A stretch of 64,000 nt of DNA, taken from sequence record MF498774.1, one strand, 5' to 3'. The position numbers and the translations under genes are program-made. Below the pieces are notes generated by a model that did no database searches, was not told the origin of the DNA, and saw only the letters and a list, made by a program, of their open reading frames with translations. The stretch's first letter is position 1. The number at the start of each line of letters is the position of its first letter. Shown piece after piece: positions 8,811 to 14,647 of the stretch.

Positions 8811-9800
8811 ATGGGTAGTTTTAATACTGTTTGTTCTGTTAGTCGTCAAATCGTTCAAGGTGGTGATAAAGTTCGCTTGATCCCAGTTGCTGGTAAACAC
8901 TGTATTAGTTCTTTCCCACTTACTGCGGTGTATGACGATTATGGTGAGTTTGACATTGATGATAATCTTGCGTTAGAATGCTTAATGAAAAACGTATCCA
9001 TGTTTAACGATGGTGTCTCTAAAGAGAACTTAGCCCATGGATTTTATCCATACGATGAAAATCGTTGGACAATCCCAGACCTATGGAGCAAAACAAAATA
9101 CGAGACTTCTTTTATTGTAGTAAAGTCTGATGTATACGATCTTGTTTCGGAGTTTGGTATTACTTGTTGGTGGGAGAAACCTGTATACGACGTTTCTGAT
9201 GCAGATGACTGGCTACCGGTAACACCGGAACGAGTCGCTAGACATCTTAAAACTCTCCAAGAAAGACTGAAAGAGTTGATCGAAGATAGCGAAGATCCAG
9301 AAGATGATATCCTTGTGAATCATGTTAAGATGATGGTTGATAATGTTCATATTGGTAATGCAAAACATTATGAACTTAGCAGATTGATGAAAACTCAAGA
9401 TCAGATTAATGATTATGCCCATCACGACGATACAACTTATGCAATTTTCAAAAATATTGAAGAATTTGCAAAATTAGAAAATTTTTATGCCGGTTGTAAT
9501 AACTTGGATATTGTGTTAACATCGCAGGAATATGGTCGTCAGACATGCAAACAGTTTGAAAAGGTTCGTATGATGACAAAAATCCAGATTACTGGATTTA
9601 ACCAAACAGAAAAAATTCAGTTGACTCCGGTTGAGTGGGATGTTAAGATTCCTTACTCTATGGTTATGGAATCAACTAAACCCAATTGGTCAAATGAAGT
9701 TGATTTGATTCGAGTTGGTAACTGTCTTGAAATTACGGACTCTAAATACAATGAGTTCAAAGAGTATAAACATGATGATGTCTATCTGAGTGAGAAATGA
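8811..9800 (+). CDS. Hypothetical phage protein
   Basis: Long ORF; likely start MGSFNTVCSVS at 8811. Confidence 0.75.
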   Translation: MGSFNTVCSVSRQIVQGGDKVRLIPVAGKHCISSFPLTAVYDDYGEFDIDDNLALECLMKNVSMFNDGVSKENLAHGFYPYDENRWTIPDLWSKTKYETSFIVVKSDVYDLVSEFGITCWWEKPVYDVSDADDWLPVTPERVARHLKTLQERLKELIEDSEDPEDDILVNHVKMMVDNVHIGNAKHYELSRLMKTQDQINDYAHHDDTTYAIFKNIEEFAKLENFYAGCNNLDIVLTSQEYGRQTCKQFEKVRMMTKIQITGFNQTEKIQLTPVEWDVKIPYSMVMESTKPNWSNEVDLIRVGNCLEITDSKYNEFKEYKHDDVYLSEK

Positions 9801-10050
9801 TATGAATTTTTTAGAATCAGAAAAAGTAACTTGGGGTGGAAGAATATACCCGCTAGATATAGCAAACCAAATATGTTCTGTTCAGCCTATAGACCCTGAG
9901 CCATTTCGAAAACTATATGAGCGGGCTAAAGAGAACGAACGTATTAAGAATCGGCTTTCTAAAGCTTTTATGGTCCCTGTATCAAGGATCGACGCATACT
10001 GTGTAGAAGCATATCGACTTGGTATAAAAGAAAGTAAAAATAAAAGTTAA
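9790..10050 (+). CDS. Hypothetical protein
   Basis: ORF overlapping the upstream stop. Confidence 0.55.
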   Translation: MRNDMNFLESEKVTWGGRIYPLDIANQICSVQPIDPEPFRKLYERAKENERIKNRLSKAFMVPVSRIDAYCVEAYRLGIKESKNKS

Positions 10051-10087
10051 ACATACTTTCTAACTGTGATATGATGTTTATATAAAT
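10039..10087 (+). promoter_or_regulatory. Sigma70-type promoter for tRNA-Leu(TAA)
   Basis: GTTAAACA...TGATATGAT; near-identical copy at 11198-11246. Confidence 0.75.
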
Positions 10088-10089
10088 GA

Positions 10090-10182
10090 GCGTGAGTGGC
10101 GAAGTTGGTTGAAACGCATCGGACTTAAAATCCGATACTGCATAATGGCACATCGTGGGTTCGATTCCCACCTCACGTACCA
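10090..10182 (+). tRNA. tRNA-Leu(TAA)
   Basis: Cloverleaf, TCGGA-CTTAAAA-TCCGA anticodon arm, long variable arm, GTTCGATT, encoded CCA. Confidence 0.95.
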
Positions 10183-10417
10183 AATACGAGATGATAAACT
10201 CAAATTACTTTTGTTGAATGAGCTTTTTGGACGTTATGTGAGTTTATCATCTCTCAAATTCAATATGAGATGCTTAATATGAACGTATACATCAGAAATT
10301 ACATGTGTGGAGTCCTTTGGGGTAGTATCTTCAACGAAGAACACTGTAAAGGTAAATGTGTAAAGATTATGCGCGGTAAACATTTGAAGCCTTTCTATCA
10401 AAAATCGAGATATTAAA

Positions 10418-10807
10418 ATGAAAGTGAAGCTTGGGGCTTACAACCTTAATGAAAAAAGTTCTTTGGTTAATACGAACGGATTAAAATTCATTTTGAATGA
10501 ACAAGTTATAGATGAATTTTCTAAAAAACTACCTGTTCTAATCAATTTTGGTCAAAAATGTTTTAACATTGATAATGCTAAAGATACTCCGGATCCGGTT
10601 GGTATTCTTAATTCCATAGAAACTTACAAGAAAGATAATATCATTATTGTTACTGGTGATGTAGAAATAACCAATGACAAAGTATATGATGTTCATGGGT
10701 GCCTTCCTTCTTTTTGTGTCCGATCTTTAGCTATTCGTAACGGTGATACTTACAAAGTTGGAGAAATTATTGCATGGGATATGGAAATATATGAAGGTTT
10801 ATCATGA
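10418..10807 (+). CDS. Hypothetical protein
   Basis: ORF track. Confidence 0.65.
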   Translation: MKVKLGAYNLNEKSSLVNTNGLKFILNEQVIDEFSKKLPVLINFGQKCFNIDNAKDTPDPVGILNSIETYKKDNIIIVTGDVEITNDKVYDVHGCLPSFCVRSLAIRNGDTYKVGEIIAWDMEIYEGLS

Positions 10808-11202
10808 ATAAACATGATATTCATCTCATTGGTATTAGTAAGTTTATCAAGAAAGGTCTTACTGTGGTTCAATCAAGTTTGATCTTCAAACAAACCAGTG
10901 AAGAATGGAAAAATATCCATGGTGTTGATGTAGACAAGATTTATTGCTATATTAACAACGAGGGAAAGGATATCTACGCAATTGGTAGACTTAGATCCTG
11001 TTGCGGACCTTGGTTGAGTGTTAGTTGTCGGTCTCTCCGTAAAAAAGGTTATATAGCATTTGACTTTAACGATGAAATTGAGATACCATATGGTTCAGGG
11101 ATGAAAACTGCTTATAGGGTATTGTTTTCTGACACCCCTAAATACGAGTATGATGAAGAAGCTAGACATCCAGTCGCTTACTTCGAAAAATACTTCAAAT
11201 AA
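10804..11202 (+). CDS. Hypothetical protein
   Basis: ORF track; ATGA overlap with the upstream gene. Confidence 0.7.
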   Translation: MNKHDIHLIGISKFIKKGLTVVQSSLIFKQTSEEWKNIHGVDVDKIYCYINNEGKDIYAIGRLRSCCGPWLSVSCRSLRKKGYIAFDFNDEIEIPYGSGMKTAYRVLFSDTPKYEYDEEARHPVAYFEKYFK

Positions 11203-11246
11203 AAGTTAAACATCCTTTCTAACTGTGATATGATGTTTATATAAAT
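11198..11246 (+). promoter_or_regulatory. Sigma70-type promoter for the main tRNA run
   Basis: One mismatch versus 10039-10087; ends 2 nt before tRNA-Arg. Confidence 0.75.
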
Positions 11247-11247
11247 T

Positions 11248-11324
11248 GCGCTGTTAGCTCAGTTGGATAGAGCAACGTTCTTCTAAAGCGTGGGTCACTG
11301 GTTCGAATCCAGTACGGCGCACCA
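11248..11324 (+). tRNA. tRNA-Arg(TCT)
   Basis: Cloverleaf, loop CTTCTAA, encoded CCA. Confidence 0.95.
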
Positions 11325-11408
11325 CGGGATGTGGTGAAATTGGCAGACACACTAGATTTAGGTTCTAGCGCCATAGGCGTGACGGTTCGAGTCCGTCCAT
11401 CCCGACCA
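11325..11408 (+). tRNA. tRNA-Leu(TAG)
   Basis: CTAGA-TTTAGGT-TCTAG anticodon arm, encoded CCA. Confidence 0.95.
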
Positions 11409-11409
11409 A

Positions 11410-11485
11410 GCGGGTAAGGTGTTTATGGATACATGCAAGCCTTCCAAGTTTGAGTAGACCGGATCGTTACCGGCTACCCGCTCCA
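11410..11485 (+). tRNA. Atypical tRNA-Gly(TCC)
   Basis: 76-nt cloverleaf, loop CTTCCAA, encoded CCA; A8, U14, T-loop ATCGTTA. Confidence 0.85.
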
Positions 11486-11496
11486 AGATTTAAAAT

Positions 11497-11566
11497 TGAT
11501 GTGTTACAGCTATCAGCTCACCGTTGAAAGAATACGGATAAGTCGGCTCGACTAAAGAACATATCA
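11497..11566 (+). ncRNA. Candidate 70-nt four-way-junction RNA
   Basis: 9-bp closing stem plus three short arms, between two tRNAs. Confidence 0.5.
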
Positions 11567-11569
11567 TTT

Positions 11570-11646
11570 GGCCCCTTAGCTCAGTTGGTTAGAGCAACCG
11601 ACTCATAATCGGTTGGTCACTGGTTCGAGTCCAGTAGGGGCCACCA
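11570..11646 (+). tRNA. tRNA-Ile2(CAT), ileX-like
   Basis: GGCCCCT acceptor stem and body like enterobacterial ileX; loop CTCATAA. Confidence 0.9.
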
Positions 11647-11668
11647 AATTTTTGATGAGAGCTATATT

Positions 11669-11863
11669 ATGTCTGGTATAAAATCCATAATTGAAAATTG
11701 GTCAGTTGGTGATGGTATAATCCATTGGAAGAATGGACGCCATAGTTTAGTAGTCTTTGGGTTTGCTCCAAATGGAGAACCTGCCTTTAAGTTTAAAGGT
11801 AAGAGTAAACTTACATCAGTAAGACAGATCGAAAAATCCATAGTTAATGCATATATTCTATAG
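11669..11863 (+). CDS. Hypothetical protein within the tRNA island
   Basis: 64-aa ORF with SD. Confidence 0.55.
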   Translation: MSGIKSIIENWSVGDGIIHWKNGRHSLVVFGFAPNGEPAFKFKGKSKLTSVRQIEKSIVNAYIL

Positions 11864-12020
11864 TTGTAAGCTCTCACGAATTTAATGGTCGTTGACCTTA
11901 CGATAATAATGAAGCGATACAGAGTCCCATCGCTTCTAAAAATATCAAAAGGGATGTTGATGCGCGTATGTAGCCGGGTTATAATGACCAAGATTCATGA
12001 AGGGTGAAAGACCACCCTAA
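11864..12020 (+). ncRNA. Candidate structured RNA
   Basis: Consecutive hairpins, including GAAGCGAT/ATCGCTTC (11911-11936). Confidence 0.35.
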
Positions 12021-12027
12021 ATATCAT

Positions 12028-12105
12028 AGCGGGGTGGAGAAGTCAGGAGTTCTCGCCAGACTCATTATCTGGAAATCGGTGGTTCAAATCCACCTCCCGC
12101 TTCCA
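12028..12105 (+). tRNA. tRNA-Met(CAT), initiator-like body
   Basis: AGCGGGGTGGAG start like fMet; CCAGA-CTCATTA-TCTGG arm; encoded CCA; CCTAAATA at 12016-12023. Confidence 0.9.
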
Positions 12106-12106
12106 A

Positions 12107-12182
12107 TGGCGTGTAGTTCAGTAGGTAGAACAGCGGACTGTTAATCCGTATGTCGTGGGTTCGAATCCCACCTCGCCAGCCA
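12107..12182 (+). tRNA. tRNA-Asn(GTT)
   Basis: GCGGA-CTGTTAA-TCCGT arm, encoded CCA. Confidence 0.95.
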
Positions 12183-12188
12183 AATTCT

Positions 12189-12279
12189 GGATGTTCGGCT
12201 ACGATGGCGGTGTAGCGGCGGACTGTAAATCCGTTCCCTCTGGGTAAACAAGTTGGTTCGAATCCAACAGCATCCACCA
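12189..12279 (+). tRNA. tRNA-Tyr(GTA)
   Basis: GCGGA-CTGTAAA-TCCGT arm, long variable arm, encoded CCA. Confidence 0.93.
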
Positions 12280-12282
12280 AAT

Positions 12283-12430
12283 AGAAGAAGTTAGAAGACG
12301 TTCTGATAAAATCCTCGGAGACGATGCCCCCTTGCGGTTTTAAACCGTTACGGATAAGCACGGGGTAATCCAAATCAACCATTATAGGGATGTGGTCATC
12401 TGGTATGTAAAATACAGTTGGTTTGGAACT
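12283..12430 (+). ncRNA. Candidate structured RNA of about 150 nt
   Basis: 11-bp stem 12369-12379/12417-12427 plus nested stems; no + strand ORF. Confidence 0.45.
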
Positions 12431-12433
12431 TTT

Positions 12434-12509
12434 CGGTGATTAGCGCAGTTGGTAGCGCGTCTGGTTTGGGACCAGAGGGTCACAGGTTCGAGTCCTGTAT
12501 CACCGACCA
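12434..12509 (+). tRNA. tRNA-Pro(TGG)
   Basis: TCTGG-TTTGGGA-CCAGA arm, encoded CCA. Confidence 0.95.
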
Positions 12510-12787
12510 CTTAGCACAAAGAACGGGTAACGACGTATGCCCCGGAATAAGCCAGCCATAGAGAATCTGGATATCCTGAAACGTGCCTTTAGGTTTCAGG
12601 CGGGATTGGTAGTATAAAGACGATATGGTAACTACTCCTTGACAAGCAGGGTTGAACTTGAGGTAACTGTCCTTTACCAAACAACGAACAGATGGACAAA
12701 ATCAGTTGAACGTCCTTCCTCCTTGTGATAGCATGTCAACTACATTAGGATATAATCACAGTCTAACGATCCTGATTATAATCCGCT
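12510..12787 (+). ncRNA. Candidate structured RNA of about 280 nt
   Basis: Multiple 5-8 bp stems, possible pseudoknot, no + strand ORF, between two tRNAs. Confidence 0.55.
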
Positions 12788-12863
12788 GCCGAATTAGCTC
12801 ATCTGGTAGAGCACAGCCTTTGTAACGCTGGGGTGGTCCGTTCGAGTCGGACATTCGGCACCA
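12788..12863 (+). tRNA. tRNA-Thr(TGT)
   Basis: Cloverleaf, loop TTTGTAA, encoded CCA. Confidence 0.93.
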
Positions 12864-12869
12864 AATTTT

Positions 12870-13335
12870 GGATTCTCGTCAATAGTCCGGTCTATGAGAA
12901 TCGACGCTTTAAGTAGCCCACCGGTATTTGTAAAAAATCTAGTGAAAGCTAGAAAATAAAAACCGAACCCCGACCTCTCCCATTACTCAAATGGTGATGT
13001 AGGTTCCTTCCCTGTAATAAGGTTCTAGTCCGTGACGGGTAAAAGGTTACATAGGGAGTATTGCTTGTGAATGACCACTGATTCAAGCCATCACATAAGC
13101 TCGTCCGTTATGACGTTAAATATAAGGCTTAGATTCCCATAAGGGCCTAAGCGTAAAAGTAACGAGCAAGACCGTTTTGCAGGCGTAGCCCATTGGGGTG
13201 ATGATGTTTGTATGTTGGGCTCGGATAGCCAATGCTATTAAGTCCGGTGATGGTGCGACCGGATCGATTTACGGAACCACATCAACAAGTATGTGCCTTG
13301 GTGGTTCGACCTGCTTTGCAGCCGCACATGAAGCT
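12870..13335 (+). ncRNA. Candidate large multi-branched RNA of about 470 nt
   Basis: At least 10 nested helices found by hand, GAAA tetraloop, no ORF. Confidence 0.65.
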
Positions 13336-13337
13336 AA

Positions 13338-13682
13338 AACTTAAAAAGAGAGGTTGTATATGTCACCGCTAAACGCAAGCCGTTAGGACGTAAAGGTAAA
13401 AATAGTGTTTTTGTAAATGGTTATACCAATAGTGGTATTCCGGTTTTATGTAATATATTTTATCAGTTTGAAACAAATGGTATTCCGTTGGATATTCTGA
13501 TAGAGAAATTTTATAATTCCGGTTATATTATTGATTGGGTTTCTTTCGTTAATGATGCTTTCGAGATCGGATGGAAGAAAGAAACTGTAATAAAAAAGAT
13601 AAAGTATGCATTTGATGATATTGAGATAAATGATTCAAATGAAATACTAAACCGTGTGATTAAATACATAGAAAGCCTGTAA
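13338..13682 (+). CDS. Small protein resembling an alanyl-tRNA synthetase helical fragment; start codon unclear
   Basis: FYQFETNGIPLD resembles AlaRS F.LYDTYGFPLD; frame open from 13338 with no ATG. Confidence 0.55.
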   Translation, partial: NLKREVVYVTAKRKPLGRKGKNSVFVNGYTNSGIPVLCNIFYQFETNGIPLDILIEKFYNSGYIIDWVSFVNDAFEIGWKKETVIKKIKYAFDDIEINDSNEILNRVIKYIESL

Positions 13683-13692
13683 GGAATGATAT

Positions 13693-13944
13693 ATGGGTAA
13701 GACATTTCGTCGTAAAAATGAAAAACATCTGGACAGTTGGTATGGTGATGAACTTAAAGTGAATCGGGATCTGGGAGATAAATATCCTAGTTATCCAGAA
13801 TCGGGTGTCAAAGATCGTTATAATACATTGAGTCGTCAGCGAGATCGTAAATTGAAACATGATATCATGCACGGTAATCACGATGTTTTTGTTGATGATG
13901 ATTACGAAATGAAAAAGGCTAACGCCGGTTATCAATATAGTTAA
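13693..13944 (+). CDS. Basic hypothetical protein (MGKTFRR)
   Basis: ORF with SD. Confidence 0.75.
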   Translation: MGKTFRRKNEKHLDSWYGDELKVNRDLGDKYPSYPESGVKDRYNTLSRQRDRKLKHDIMHGNHDVFVDDDYEMKKANAGYQYS

Positions 13945-13947
13945 GAT

Positions 13948-14192
13948 TTTAAAGTGTACGCGCCCCAAGAGTGGCGCAGCGGCGTCAAACAATACGAGTC
14001 AAGGGTAAAGGTGATACCCTGTATTGTCACTAGACGAAAAGAGACCATATTGCCTCGATTATGGTCCCCGTTTTAAAGAGGGTGGTGTGACCTACCACTA
14101 TCACAAGGTTGTTGTCTGACACCAAAGACAACGTTCGGCAACGGGGACTTTATCTTGCTTTGACTGGCTTGATATAGTCCCCGTTTTTCTTT
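13948..14192 (+). ncRNA. Candidate structured RNA of about 245 nt ending in an intrinsic terminator
   Basis: Six hairpins, then a 10-bp stem AACGGGGACT/AGTCCCCGTT and a T tract. Confidence 0.55.
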
Positions 14193-14212
14193 TTATTAAC
14201 GGAGAATTTGAT

Positions 14213-14398
14213 ATGTTGACTGGAATTTTTATTGTGTATTTGATTGGTGTTCTGGTATTCATTACCGCATTTGTGATTACCGATCATCAAGACCGAGAAG
14301 AGGATAGTACCCCTACTTTTAAAGAAGTTATGGATTATCTTTCTGTATCAGCAATTTGGCCCGTTTTGATTGCTATGTCGATTATTCGTAGTCTTTAA
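14213..14398 (+). CDS. Small membrane protein
   Basis: Two hydrophobic helices. Confidence 0.7.
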   Translation: MLTGIFIVYLIGVLVFITAFVITDHQDREEDSTPTFKEVMDYLSVSAIWPVLIAMSIIRSL

Positions 14399-14437
14399 TC
14401 CCTAAATATGTTCATATCAACTATAGGAGAGTTTTAA

Positions 14438-14647
14438 ATGGCTAAGAATATTCATGAGAAAAGTCATGCCCGTGAGGGTCGTGGTGGTGCCAATGGTGGT
14501 AATGAAAAATGGTATAACTCCAAACTGTGGGAAAACGTAGAAGCCAAACAGGTTAGTCTGGATGCAAAGCCGGATGAACTGTTGAAAGAGAAAGAAGGTG
14601 AAGACCTTCGAGCAAAACAGCGTCGTATGTTCGCGATGGCTTATTAA
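14438..14647 (+). CDS. Late hypothetical protein
   Basis: CCTAAATA at 14401 and SD GGAG. Confidence 0.75.
   Translation: MAKNIHEKSHAREGRGGANGGNEKWYNSKLWENVEAKQVSLDAKPDELLKEKEGEDLRAKQRRMFAMAY

Follow-up and report, generated by a model that had tools for sequence, protein, structure and literature searches.

Extra stable RNAs encoded in phage tRNA arrays, among them RNA C and RNA D of T4, have been known since the 1970s. Each GOLLD or ROOL RNA is a single unit of ~600-800 nt, and these units assemble into homo-oligomeric cages. Two reports describe GOLLD and ROOL as associated with phages or prophages, often lying beside tRNA genes, and of unknown function (PMC5737381; bioRxiv 10.1101/2024.12.08.627333). 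The two T4 species, also called species 1 and 2 stable RNAs and encoded by rnaC and rnaD, derive from the T4 tRNA region and accumulate during infection without a known role (PMC3014915, PMC9697503). Theta ribozymes, which are minimal HDV-like ribozymes, are marked by cleavage no more than 5 nt away from the 3' end of a tRNA, which usually has no encoded CCA (PMC10879173). As to how tRNAs are freed from their transcripts, a study of E. coli reports that RNase E cuts 1-3 nt past the CCA and RNase P cuts the 5' ends, and that polycistronic tRNAs are separable by RNase P alone (PMC2190699).

Here we describe a gap of about 470 nt that follows the last gene of a tRNA array in an Aeromonas phage. 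The element is a conserved, structured, non-coding RNA within the phage tRNA array, on the same (+) strand as the tRNAs. Judged by sequence comparison, it consists of four or five small folded modules in a row, each conserved separately, and not of one giant RNA. Two of these, the A-type modules and the B motif, are RNA families that are absent from Rfam release 15 and recur in the tRNA arrays of other phages. Literature searches found no prior description of these motifs.

Results

The window, by which we mean the whole stretch of 64,000 nt that was analysed (MF498774.1), is 100% identical to Aeromonas phage AS-yj, a T4-like phage of the Straboviridae, genus Ceceduovirus. Ten tRNA genes were found by ARAGORN on its + strand at 10090-12863, and the last of these, a tRNA-Thr (UGU) with encoded CCA at 12788-12863 (+; Rfam tRNA model, 55.7 bits), is the 5' neighbour of the element. 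The initial annotation had placed a structured RNA directly after tRNA-Thr, which the end of that gene at 12863 (ARAGORN) bears out, and had described it as richer in G+C than the flanking genes, as it indeed is (0.44-0.47 over 12650-13400 vs 0.28-0.39). Its description of the stretch as ORF-free needs some qualification: short ORFs do exist between 12864 and ~13340, but all are of 48 aa or less, none matches a PHROG, and they are not conserved, being disrupted in relatives by indels and by the insertion of a tRNA-Trp gene. A sigma-70-like promoter match lies at 12755-12782, just 5' of tRNA-Thr, and neither a promoter-like nor a terminator-like site was found on the + strand from 12782 to 13468.

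The surroundings of the element have features of their own. The 278-nt spacer between tRNA-Pro and tRNA-Thr (12510-12787) is conserved and has no ORF; a hairpin within it, CCUGAAAC/GUUUCAGG (12575-82/12593-600), reads CCUGUAAU/AUUACAGG in ZPAH1, a compensated change that indicates further structured RNA in the AS-yj tRNA array. On the 3' side, phages 65 and avDM6 share with AS-yj a conserved mini-ORF at 13360-13386 (MSPLNASR; Shine-Dalgarno GAGAGG). For the 64-aa gene at 13488-13682 (phrog_22967), conservation at the protein level appears to extend over ~70-100 nt 5' of the first ATG/GTG/TTG, the frame being open from 13338, and the gene may involve a frameshift or be coupled to the mini-ORF. 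Further downstream, a second stretch that is poor in ORFs, has a G+C above its neighbours and contains several hairpins lies at 13945-14210 of the window, 3' of an 83-aa gene.

Known families were sought with Rfam release 15 (cmscan) in the window at the gathering score, in 9500-14600 at E<=10 and in eight homologous phage loci at E<=1. No family matched 12864-13340 at the gathering score or at E<=10, and the homologous stretches in the eight other loci yielded, at E<=1, only tRNAs and chance matches. The GOLLD and ROOL covariance models had no match in the window, in 9500-14600 (E<=10) or in the eight loci (E<=1), and models of HDV, hammerhead, twister, pistol and hatchet ribozymes and of riboswitches had none in 9500-14600 or the eight loci. 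Such a scan had been suggested in the initial annotation, and its outcome is in line with absence from known families. That annotation had proposed a GOLLD/ROOL-class or a new large phage RNA; a structured RNA without an Rfam match is what we find, and the GOLLD/ROOL class is dismissed, no model matching at E<=10.

Several other candidates were rejected. Group I intron and hammerhead cores gave no match. ARAGORN found neither tRNA nor tmRNA in 12864-13340, and a tRNA or pseudo-tRNA was discarded in that the Rfam tRNA models, like ARAGORN, recognised no cloverleaf there, even at E<=10. Pieces resembling tmRNA (AAUAGUC, ACGCUUUA and CCUCUCCC), and short likenesses of A1 to ssrA, were noticed by eye; tmRNA was rejected, with no ARAGORN or Rfam match and no conserved tag frame, and no reading frame common to the element copies of AS-yj and contig L019 is conserved. 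The first reading of the sequence had likewise reported no tmRNA or intron landmarks. A 10-nt stretch seemed identical to the 16S decoding strand, and there were apparent likenesses to RNase P RNA. That the element mimics stable RNAs of the host was rejected: BLAST against 5,426 E. coli genomes matched nothing, and local alignments of the B-motif copies with E. coli ssrA, 16S, 23S and 5S RNAs stayed within the range of shuffles.

The folding energy of the whole 477 nt, compared with shuffles as had also been suggested, is modest and not strand-specific: z = -2.0 on the + strand stands beside an equally low -2.45 on the - strand. Among single modules, C reaches -2.5 (+) vs -1.65 (-), B2 has -1.1, and A1, B and D lie near 0, all of these energies coming from nested folding, which is blind to pseudoknots. 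Therefore, the case for a structured RNA rests on covariation and not on energy. The suggested covariation test on homologues proved more rewarding, with compensatory changes that favour folding of the A-type, B and C on the + strand.

The 5'-most module, A1 (12864-12930, +), scores 81.7 bits with model R2 and is supported by covariation. It opens with a leader AAUUUUG, followed by stem S1a (12871-77/12896-902), a 4-nt bulge and stem S1b (12882-85/12892-95). Its loop at 12887-91 pairs with 12920-24 as a pseudoknot, and its 3' part consists of GAC (12903-05) and a mini-hairpin S3 (12906-08/12915-17) with the loop UUAAGU. A second A-type pseudoknot module, D (13267-13334, +; model R2, 52.9 bits), has a stem S1 (13274-80/13301-07), GAC (13308-10), a mini-hairpin CUGC[UUU]GCAG (13311-21) and a pseudoknot between the loop AUGUGC (13291-96) and GCACAU (13324-29); in phage 65 the latter reads GUACAU, which preserves the pair as G.U. 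By their predicted folds, A1 and D are paralogous copies of a single ~65-nt design. The A-type begins with a U-rich leader and a 7-bp stem, which a 5'-side bulge of 4-5 nt separates from an inner stem of 3-5 bp; a loop, GAC and a mini-hairpin, its own loop often UUAAKU, come next. The 7-bp stem is stacked on the inner stem with a continuous 3' strand, and the loop pairs with a strand ~30 nt downstream.

The A-type occurs in seven sequence versions, with A1, A2 (a second copy in 65 and avDM6), D and the copy of Ahp1_CNU-2021 (pattern scan, then R2) represented, and the pseudoknot is compensated in all of them (CCGGU/ACCGG, CGCCU/AGGCG, CGCA/UGCG, AUGGG/CCCGU and ACGAGC/GCUCGU). In a MAFFT alignment of 11 copies, 87% of cells are paired vs 64% in shuffles, 16 of the 19 pairs vary on both sides, and the covariation score is 0.599 vs 0.202 shuffled and at most 0.227 with slid partners. 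The wider searches were exact-pattern scans, and family size and covariation statistics are accordingly lower bounds here and for the other modules. In the searches run, the A-type family was found in Aeromonas phages only, and an exact-pattern scan of IMG/VR with the A1 linker returned only chance matches in coding DNA.

By R2 model coordinates, A1 and D begin 0-1 nt past the tRNA end, and their stem starts 5-7 nt past the CCA, the same spacing as the tRNA-to-tRNA gaps in the array. The upstream neighbour of A1 is tRNA-Thr in Ceceduovirus and tRNA-Asp in 65 and avDM6; that of D is tRNA-Trp, and in CC2 and AP1 module D starts at base 1 after it. Copies that do not follow a tRNA are A2 in 65 and avDM6 and those in L019 and Ahp1_CNU.

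Between A1 and B lies a small hairpin, UCUAG[UGAAAG]CUAGA (12938-12953, +), read from the sequence, which is kept with an altered loop in CC2 and partly deleted in 65 and avDM6. The B motif (12950-13069, +; model R1, 109.9 bits, and covariation) is a fold of ~115 nt in which the adjacent helices d (12961-64/13002-05) and a (13006-09/13043-46) lie on one continuous strand. Within helix d lies hairpin H (12980-84/12990-94), usually with a GNRA loop; within helix a lie the invariant CCUGUAANAAGGUU (14-nt loop) and hairpin h, which has 3 bp (13028-30/13034-36) and is capped by a CGN triloop. The invariant CCUGUAAUAAGGUU occupies 13011-24, and about 20 bases of B are invariant. A possible pseudoknot k would pair 12965-69 with 13021-25; its RACC/GGUY core is invariant, so that covariation tests it weakly.

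Model R1 gives 38-115 bits in 21 loci besides AS-yj, in T4-like and T5-like Aeromonas phages, Citrobacter phage Ci1, Cronobacter phage S13, Shewanella phages KASIA and 1/4, and IMG/VR and metagenome contigs; scores below 22 bits (a B-pattern match in L016 and several IMG/VR matches) were set aside as chance. B sits between a lysozyme gene and tRNA-Met in Ci1 and S13 and in the terminase-portal gap in KASIA, and it is without a tRNA in the DNA examined of three further loci (L051, L032 and L054). T4-like and T5-like Aeromonas phages share about 82% identity in B. Across 21 distinct copies, 86% of cells are paired vs 68% in shuffles, 12 of 14 pairs vary on both sides, and the score is 0.461 vs 0.161 shuffled and at most 0.142 with slid partners, in an alignment that was fitted to model R1 and favours its structure. 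A hand-made table holds 10, 9 and 8 distinct compensated strand pairs for helices d, a and h, respectively. A sigma-70 promoter within B (TTGACA in Ci1) was rejected, since the other copies do not keep it.

The KASIA terminase-portal gap (L010, 1266-1690) is a similar mosaic. A piece of ~45 nt in it (~1349-1395) has counterparts, mostly at ~85-95% identity, in dozens of Vibrio, Escherichia, Cronobacter and Serratia phages, and hairpins with the loop CCGUUAAG recur in KASIA, L017 and L018. The KASIA terminase gene is annotated as a join of three pieces, and an HNH endonuclease gene overlaps it.

B2 (13057-13125, +) consists of two hairpins (~13063-13088 and ~13102-13115) recognised from the alignments, the fold z being that given above. 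It is lineage-specific, occurring only where B is present, in Aeromonas Straboviridae; its stems are invariant and only its loops vary, so that covariation is uninformative.

Module C (13126-13266, +) is a multi-hairpin domain defined by RNAalifold on seven phages and a check of each helix. It comprises hairpin C1 (13127-32/13147-52), a pairing of CGAGC (13163-67) with GCUCG (13219-23) plus CC/GG, a long hairpin (13178-87/13202-12, tip 13188-99), C3 (13223-39) and C4 (13242-48/13258-64). Six of the 43 RNAalifold pairs have compensatory changes, few informative ones being available among phages so closely related. Within C, UGCAGGCGUA pairs with UGAUGUUUGUA through compensatory C-G/U-A and G.U/U.G changes, and in C4 CCGG/CCGG becomes CUGG/CCAG. 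Several G.U pairs, invariant or almost invariant, would be C.A on the other strand, which identifies the + strand as the folded one. C was found only in Aeromonas Ceceduovirus and Ishigurovirus.

The modules, of 55-150 nt, occur independently and in different orders in different phage families. BLAST matched the full stretch only in Ceceduovirus genomes, where A1, B, B2 and C are contiguous at 91-100% identity. The Ishigurovirus phages 65 and avDM6 lack the middle 180 nt but keep ~65 nt at the 5' end and ~150 nt at the 3' end, so that A1 joins C without B; ZPAH1 and Aswh_1 keep the middle and 3' part. In the T5-like phages AhSzw-1, Akh-2 and AhP_Mru1, B lies between tRNA-Glu and tRNA-Ile and C is absent, and in contig L019 B precedes A1, the reverse of the AS-yj order. 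No covarying pairs link two modules, and matches to models R1 and R2 lie on the tRNA strand only.

A tRNA-Trp gene separates C and D in AP1, Assk, CC2, ZPAH1 and Aswh_1. Its insertion site in AS-yj is 13266/13267, the relatives reading GAUCGAUUCU-tRNATrp-AUUUACGG (alignment; ARAGORN on CC2, ZPAH1 and Aswh_1; AP1 annotation). The gene is cleanly lost in AS-yj and is present as an internally deleted copy in AS-szw (L022 and L023 compared); its loss is ongoing within one phage species. In CC2 (L004, ~2440-2640) hairpin C1 is found in two copies around an insert of ~130 nt, a run of N occupies the same place in Assk (L021), and this spot appears to be a recombination hot spot.

Contig L019 (JBOFFJ010000068.1) is filed under a Phocaeicola metagenome-assembled genome, and its array of 23 tRNAs has a layout nearly identical to that of T5-like Aeromonas phages; it is probably mis-binned phage DNA. 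The T5-like Aeromonas phages also carry a tRNA with the amber-reading anticodon CUA (labelled 'Pyl' by ARAGORN), and in several arrays ARAGORN gives tRNA-like genes 2-nt or 4-nt anticodons. These CUA-anticodon and odd-anticodon genes lie at L007 437-511, L019 334-408, L002 345-420, L003 2401-2472 and L007 1343-1416.

The first reading of the sequence had drawn a single multi-branched RNA of ~470 nt, and this drawing does not survive the comparison, given that the modules are separate and reordered and that tRNA-Trp splits its four-hairpin junction in close relatives. Many of its individual helices fare better. GATTCTC/GAGAATC, CCATT/AATGG and TCCGGT/ACCGGA have compensatory changes in relatives, ATAGC/GCTAT is upheld by G.U/A-U changes only, GCTTAG/CTAAGC and GAACCAC/GTGGTTC hold and are invariant among the sequences compared, and the hairpin TCTAGT/GCTAGA is present, the relatives testing it weakly. 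The closing helix GCAGG/CCTGC fails: the tRNA-Trp gene lies between its arms in AP1, Assk, CC2, ZPAH1 and Aswh_1, and GCAGGCGUA pairs locally instead, with compensatory changes. AGCCCA/TGGGCT has an A.C mismatch in five of seven relatives. GCTCGT/ACGAGC lacks its partner in 65 and avDM6 and has a G.A mismatch in others, ACGAGC pairing with GCUCG at 13219-23. Both arms of CGGT/ACCG belong to other, covarying helices, and TCCCT..GTAA/TTAC..AGGGA is lost in T5-like and metagenomic copies.

Discussion

We suggest, with a probability of roughly 0.6, that the element supplies stable RNA modules that share a transcript with the tRNAs and are excised from it by the nucleases that process tRNAs, much as T4 RNA C and RNA D are. 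The modules would be transcribed together with the tRNAs of the array, cuts by RNase P and RNase E at the neighbouring tRNAs would release them, and the released modules, whose ends and stability we infer, would remain in the cell as stable small RNAs, like RNA C and RNA D in T4. The A-type modules would fill a 'tRNA slot' 5-7 nt behind a CCA end, and this placement may point to a role in cutting or capping tRNA transcripts. Most likely they would be end structures or mark cutting sites, delimiting the tRNA 3' trailer and shielding the RNA after its release. For B, comparison of the copies makes it most likely that it would act in trans, binding a host or phage factor via its invariant loop, because ~20 bases are invariant and identity stays at ~82% between T4-like and T5-like phages of one host genus. 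B lies away from tRNAs in KASIA, and in L051, L032 and L054 the DNA examined holds no tRNA, and so release by tRNA processing is not its general mode.

An unlikely but serious alternative is that the A-type modules imitate the top half of a tRNA, or form a new self-cleaving fold, and prompt a cut just behind the last tRNA, made by RNase P or by the RNA itself, and that B is a new catalytic or decoy RNA and a mobile RNA gene. A decoy B might, for example, titrate a nuclease or a defence protein of the host, and unrelated phages of Aeromonas and neighbouring gamma-proteobacteria would pass the B gene among themselves. A purely cis-acting version, in which A-type and perhaps B cut themselves or recruit RNase P as tRNA top-half mimics, is an unlikely though live rival. 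It would trim the trailer of a tRNA with no further tRNA behind it, in the way that gut-phage theta ribozymes do, and the position of A1 and D past the CCA, equal to a tRNA-to-tRNA gap, speaks for it. The 7-bp and 3-5-bp stems with their continuous 3' strand and invariant G-C first pair resemble an acceptor and T arm, the pseudoknot closes two coaxial stacks, a C after the mini-hairpin is conserved in 9 of 11 copies, and the many invariant bases of B are typical of ribozymes. Moreover, theta ribozymes place their cleavage site at phage tRNA 3' ends (PMC10879173), and pseudoknot substrates can be cut by RNase P (PMC12710915). However, none of the HDV, hammerhead, twister, pistol and hatchet models matched, the A-type has no G.U at the base of P1 and no evident P1.1, and its 3' strand pairs with the loop and not with J1/2. 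The tRNAs here encode CCA, whereas 95% of theta-associated tRNAs do not, RCCA is missing after the A-type stem, and several copies do not lie behind a tRNA.

The remaining readings are improbable. A regulatory leader, that is, a riboswitch or attenuator for the mini-ORF at 13360 and the 64-aa gene that follows, would fit the lack of a terminator-like or promoter-like site before the downstream genes, the position of D, and of A2 in phage 65, directly upstream of a conserved Shine-Dalgarno and mini-ORF, and the riboswitch-like invariant loops of B. Yet the genes 3' of B differ by lineage (module C, tRNAs, portal gene), alternative terminator/anti-terminator pairing is not conserved, and no riboswitch model matched. 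Slightly less probable still is one large ornate RNA of the GOLLD/ROOL kind, with the modules as domains of a single 470-nt molecule. The contiguity of A1, B, B2 and C in all Ceceduovirus, at 91-100% identity, speaks for it, as do the adjacent tRNAs, which many GOLLD and ROOL genes also have, and the whole-region z of -2.0; but the minus strand folds equally well (z = -2.45), and neither GOLLD nor ROOL nor any other Rfam family matched at E<=10. Its closing helix, GCAGG/CCTGC, is split by tRNA-Trp and contradicted by covariation, and the modules are found alone and reordered with no covarying pair between them. The least probable reading is non-functional debris, namely decayed tRNA genes and recombination scars, or DNA cassettes that only promote gene shuffling. 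The locus is certainly an indel hot spot, with tRNA-Trp present, absent or half-deleted, C1 duplicated around an insert in CC2, 180 nt deleted in 65 and avDM6, and, among the tRNA genes of ZPAH1, a gene for a homing-type HNH nuclease. Against this, the many fully compensated pair changes, pseudoknots included, require selection on RNA structure, B is ~82% identical between T4-like and T5-like phages, and tRNA models match nothing here.

The presence of B in T4-like, T5-like and other phages implies that an RNA gene has been exchanged horizontally and that its function is tied to the host. The A-type and B are two well-defined folds with strong covariation, and at 55-115 nt both are small enough for direct assays; the locus thereby makes the old question of what the extra phage RNAs do approachable.

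The nearest known systems each share something with the element. Like RNA C and RNA D, it is non-coding and lies behind the last tRNA of a T4-type array, on the same strand as the tRNAs (T4 annotation). Homology of B or the A-type to rnaC or rnaD was rejected: at the T4 rnaD/rnaC locus (L015), R1 (E<=10) and R2 (E<=1) matched nothing, and there is no BLAST similarity to T4. The modules here are other folds, with pseudoknots, and B also occurs in T5-like and other phages, at times away from tRNAs. With GOLLD and ROOL the AS-yj element shares its position directly 3' of tRNA-Thr in a phage array of 10 tRNAs, but its units are of 55-150 nt, separable and reshuffled.

The A-type recalls theta ribozymes as a small pseudoknotted RNA at a phage tRNA 3' end, with a 7-bp stem whose 3' strand comes after a short inner stem and is followed by a small hairpin and a closing 3' strand. 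In contrast, its pseudoknot joins loop and 3' strand and not J1/2 and 3' strand, its first pair is G-C in 11 of 11 copies and not G.U, and it has no P1.1 and no GG after the stem; the AS-yj tRNAs carry CCA, and the host is Aeromonas and not a member of the Bacteroidota or Bacillota. An HDV-like fold, a nested double pseudoknot of P1, P1.1, P2 and P3 with G.U at the cleavage site and a catalytic C in J4/2, was therefore rejected, topology and hallmark pairs not fitting and HDV models having no match. As for tRNA top-half mimics, which are RNase P substrates, the A-type resembles them in its coaxial stem of 7 + 4-5 bp with continuous 3' strand and G-C first pair, in a loop locked by tertiary pairing and in an array position where a tRNA would sit. 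It differs from tRNA-like structures in having no T-loop sequence and no CCA, and neither ARAGORN nor the Rfam tRNA models match it. The element is thus a real structured non-coding RNA, a chain of small modules and not a giant of GOLLD or ROOL size, and the A-type and B are new RNA families of a known general kind.
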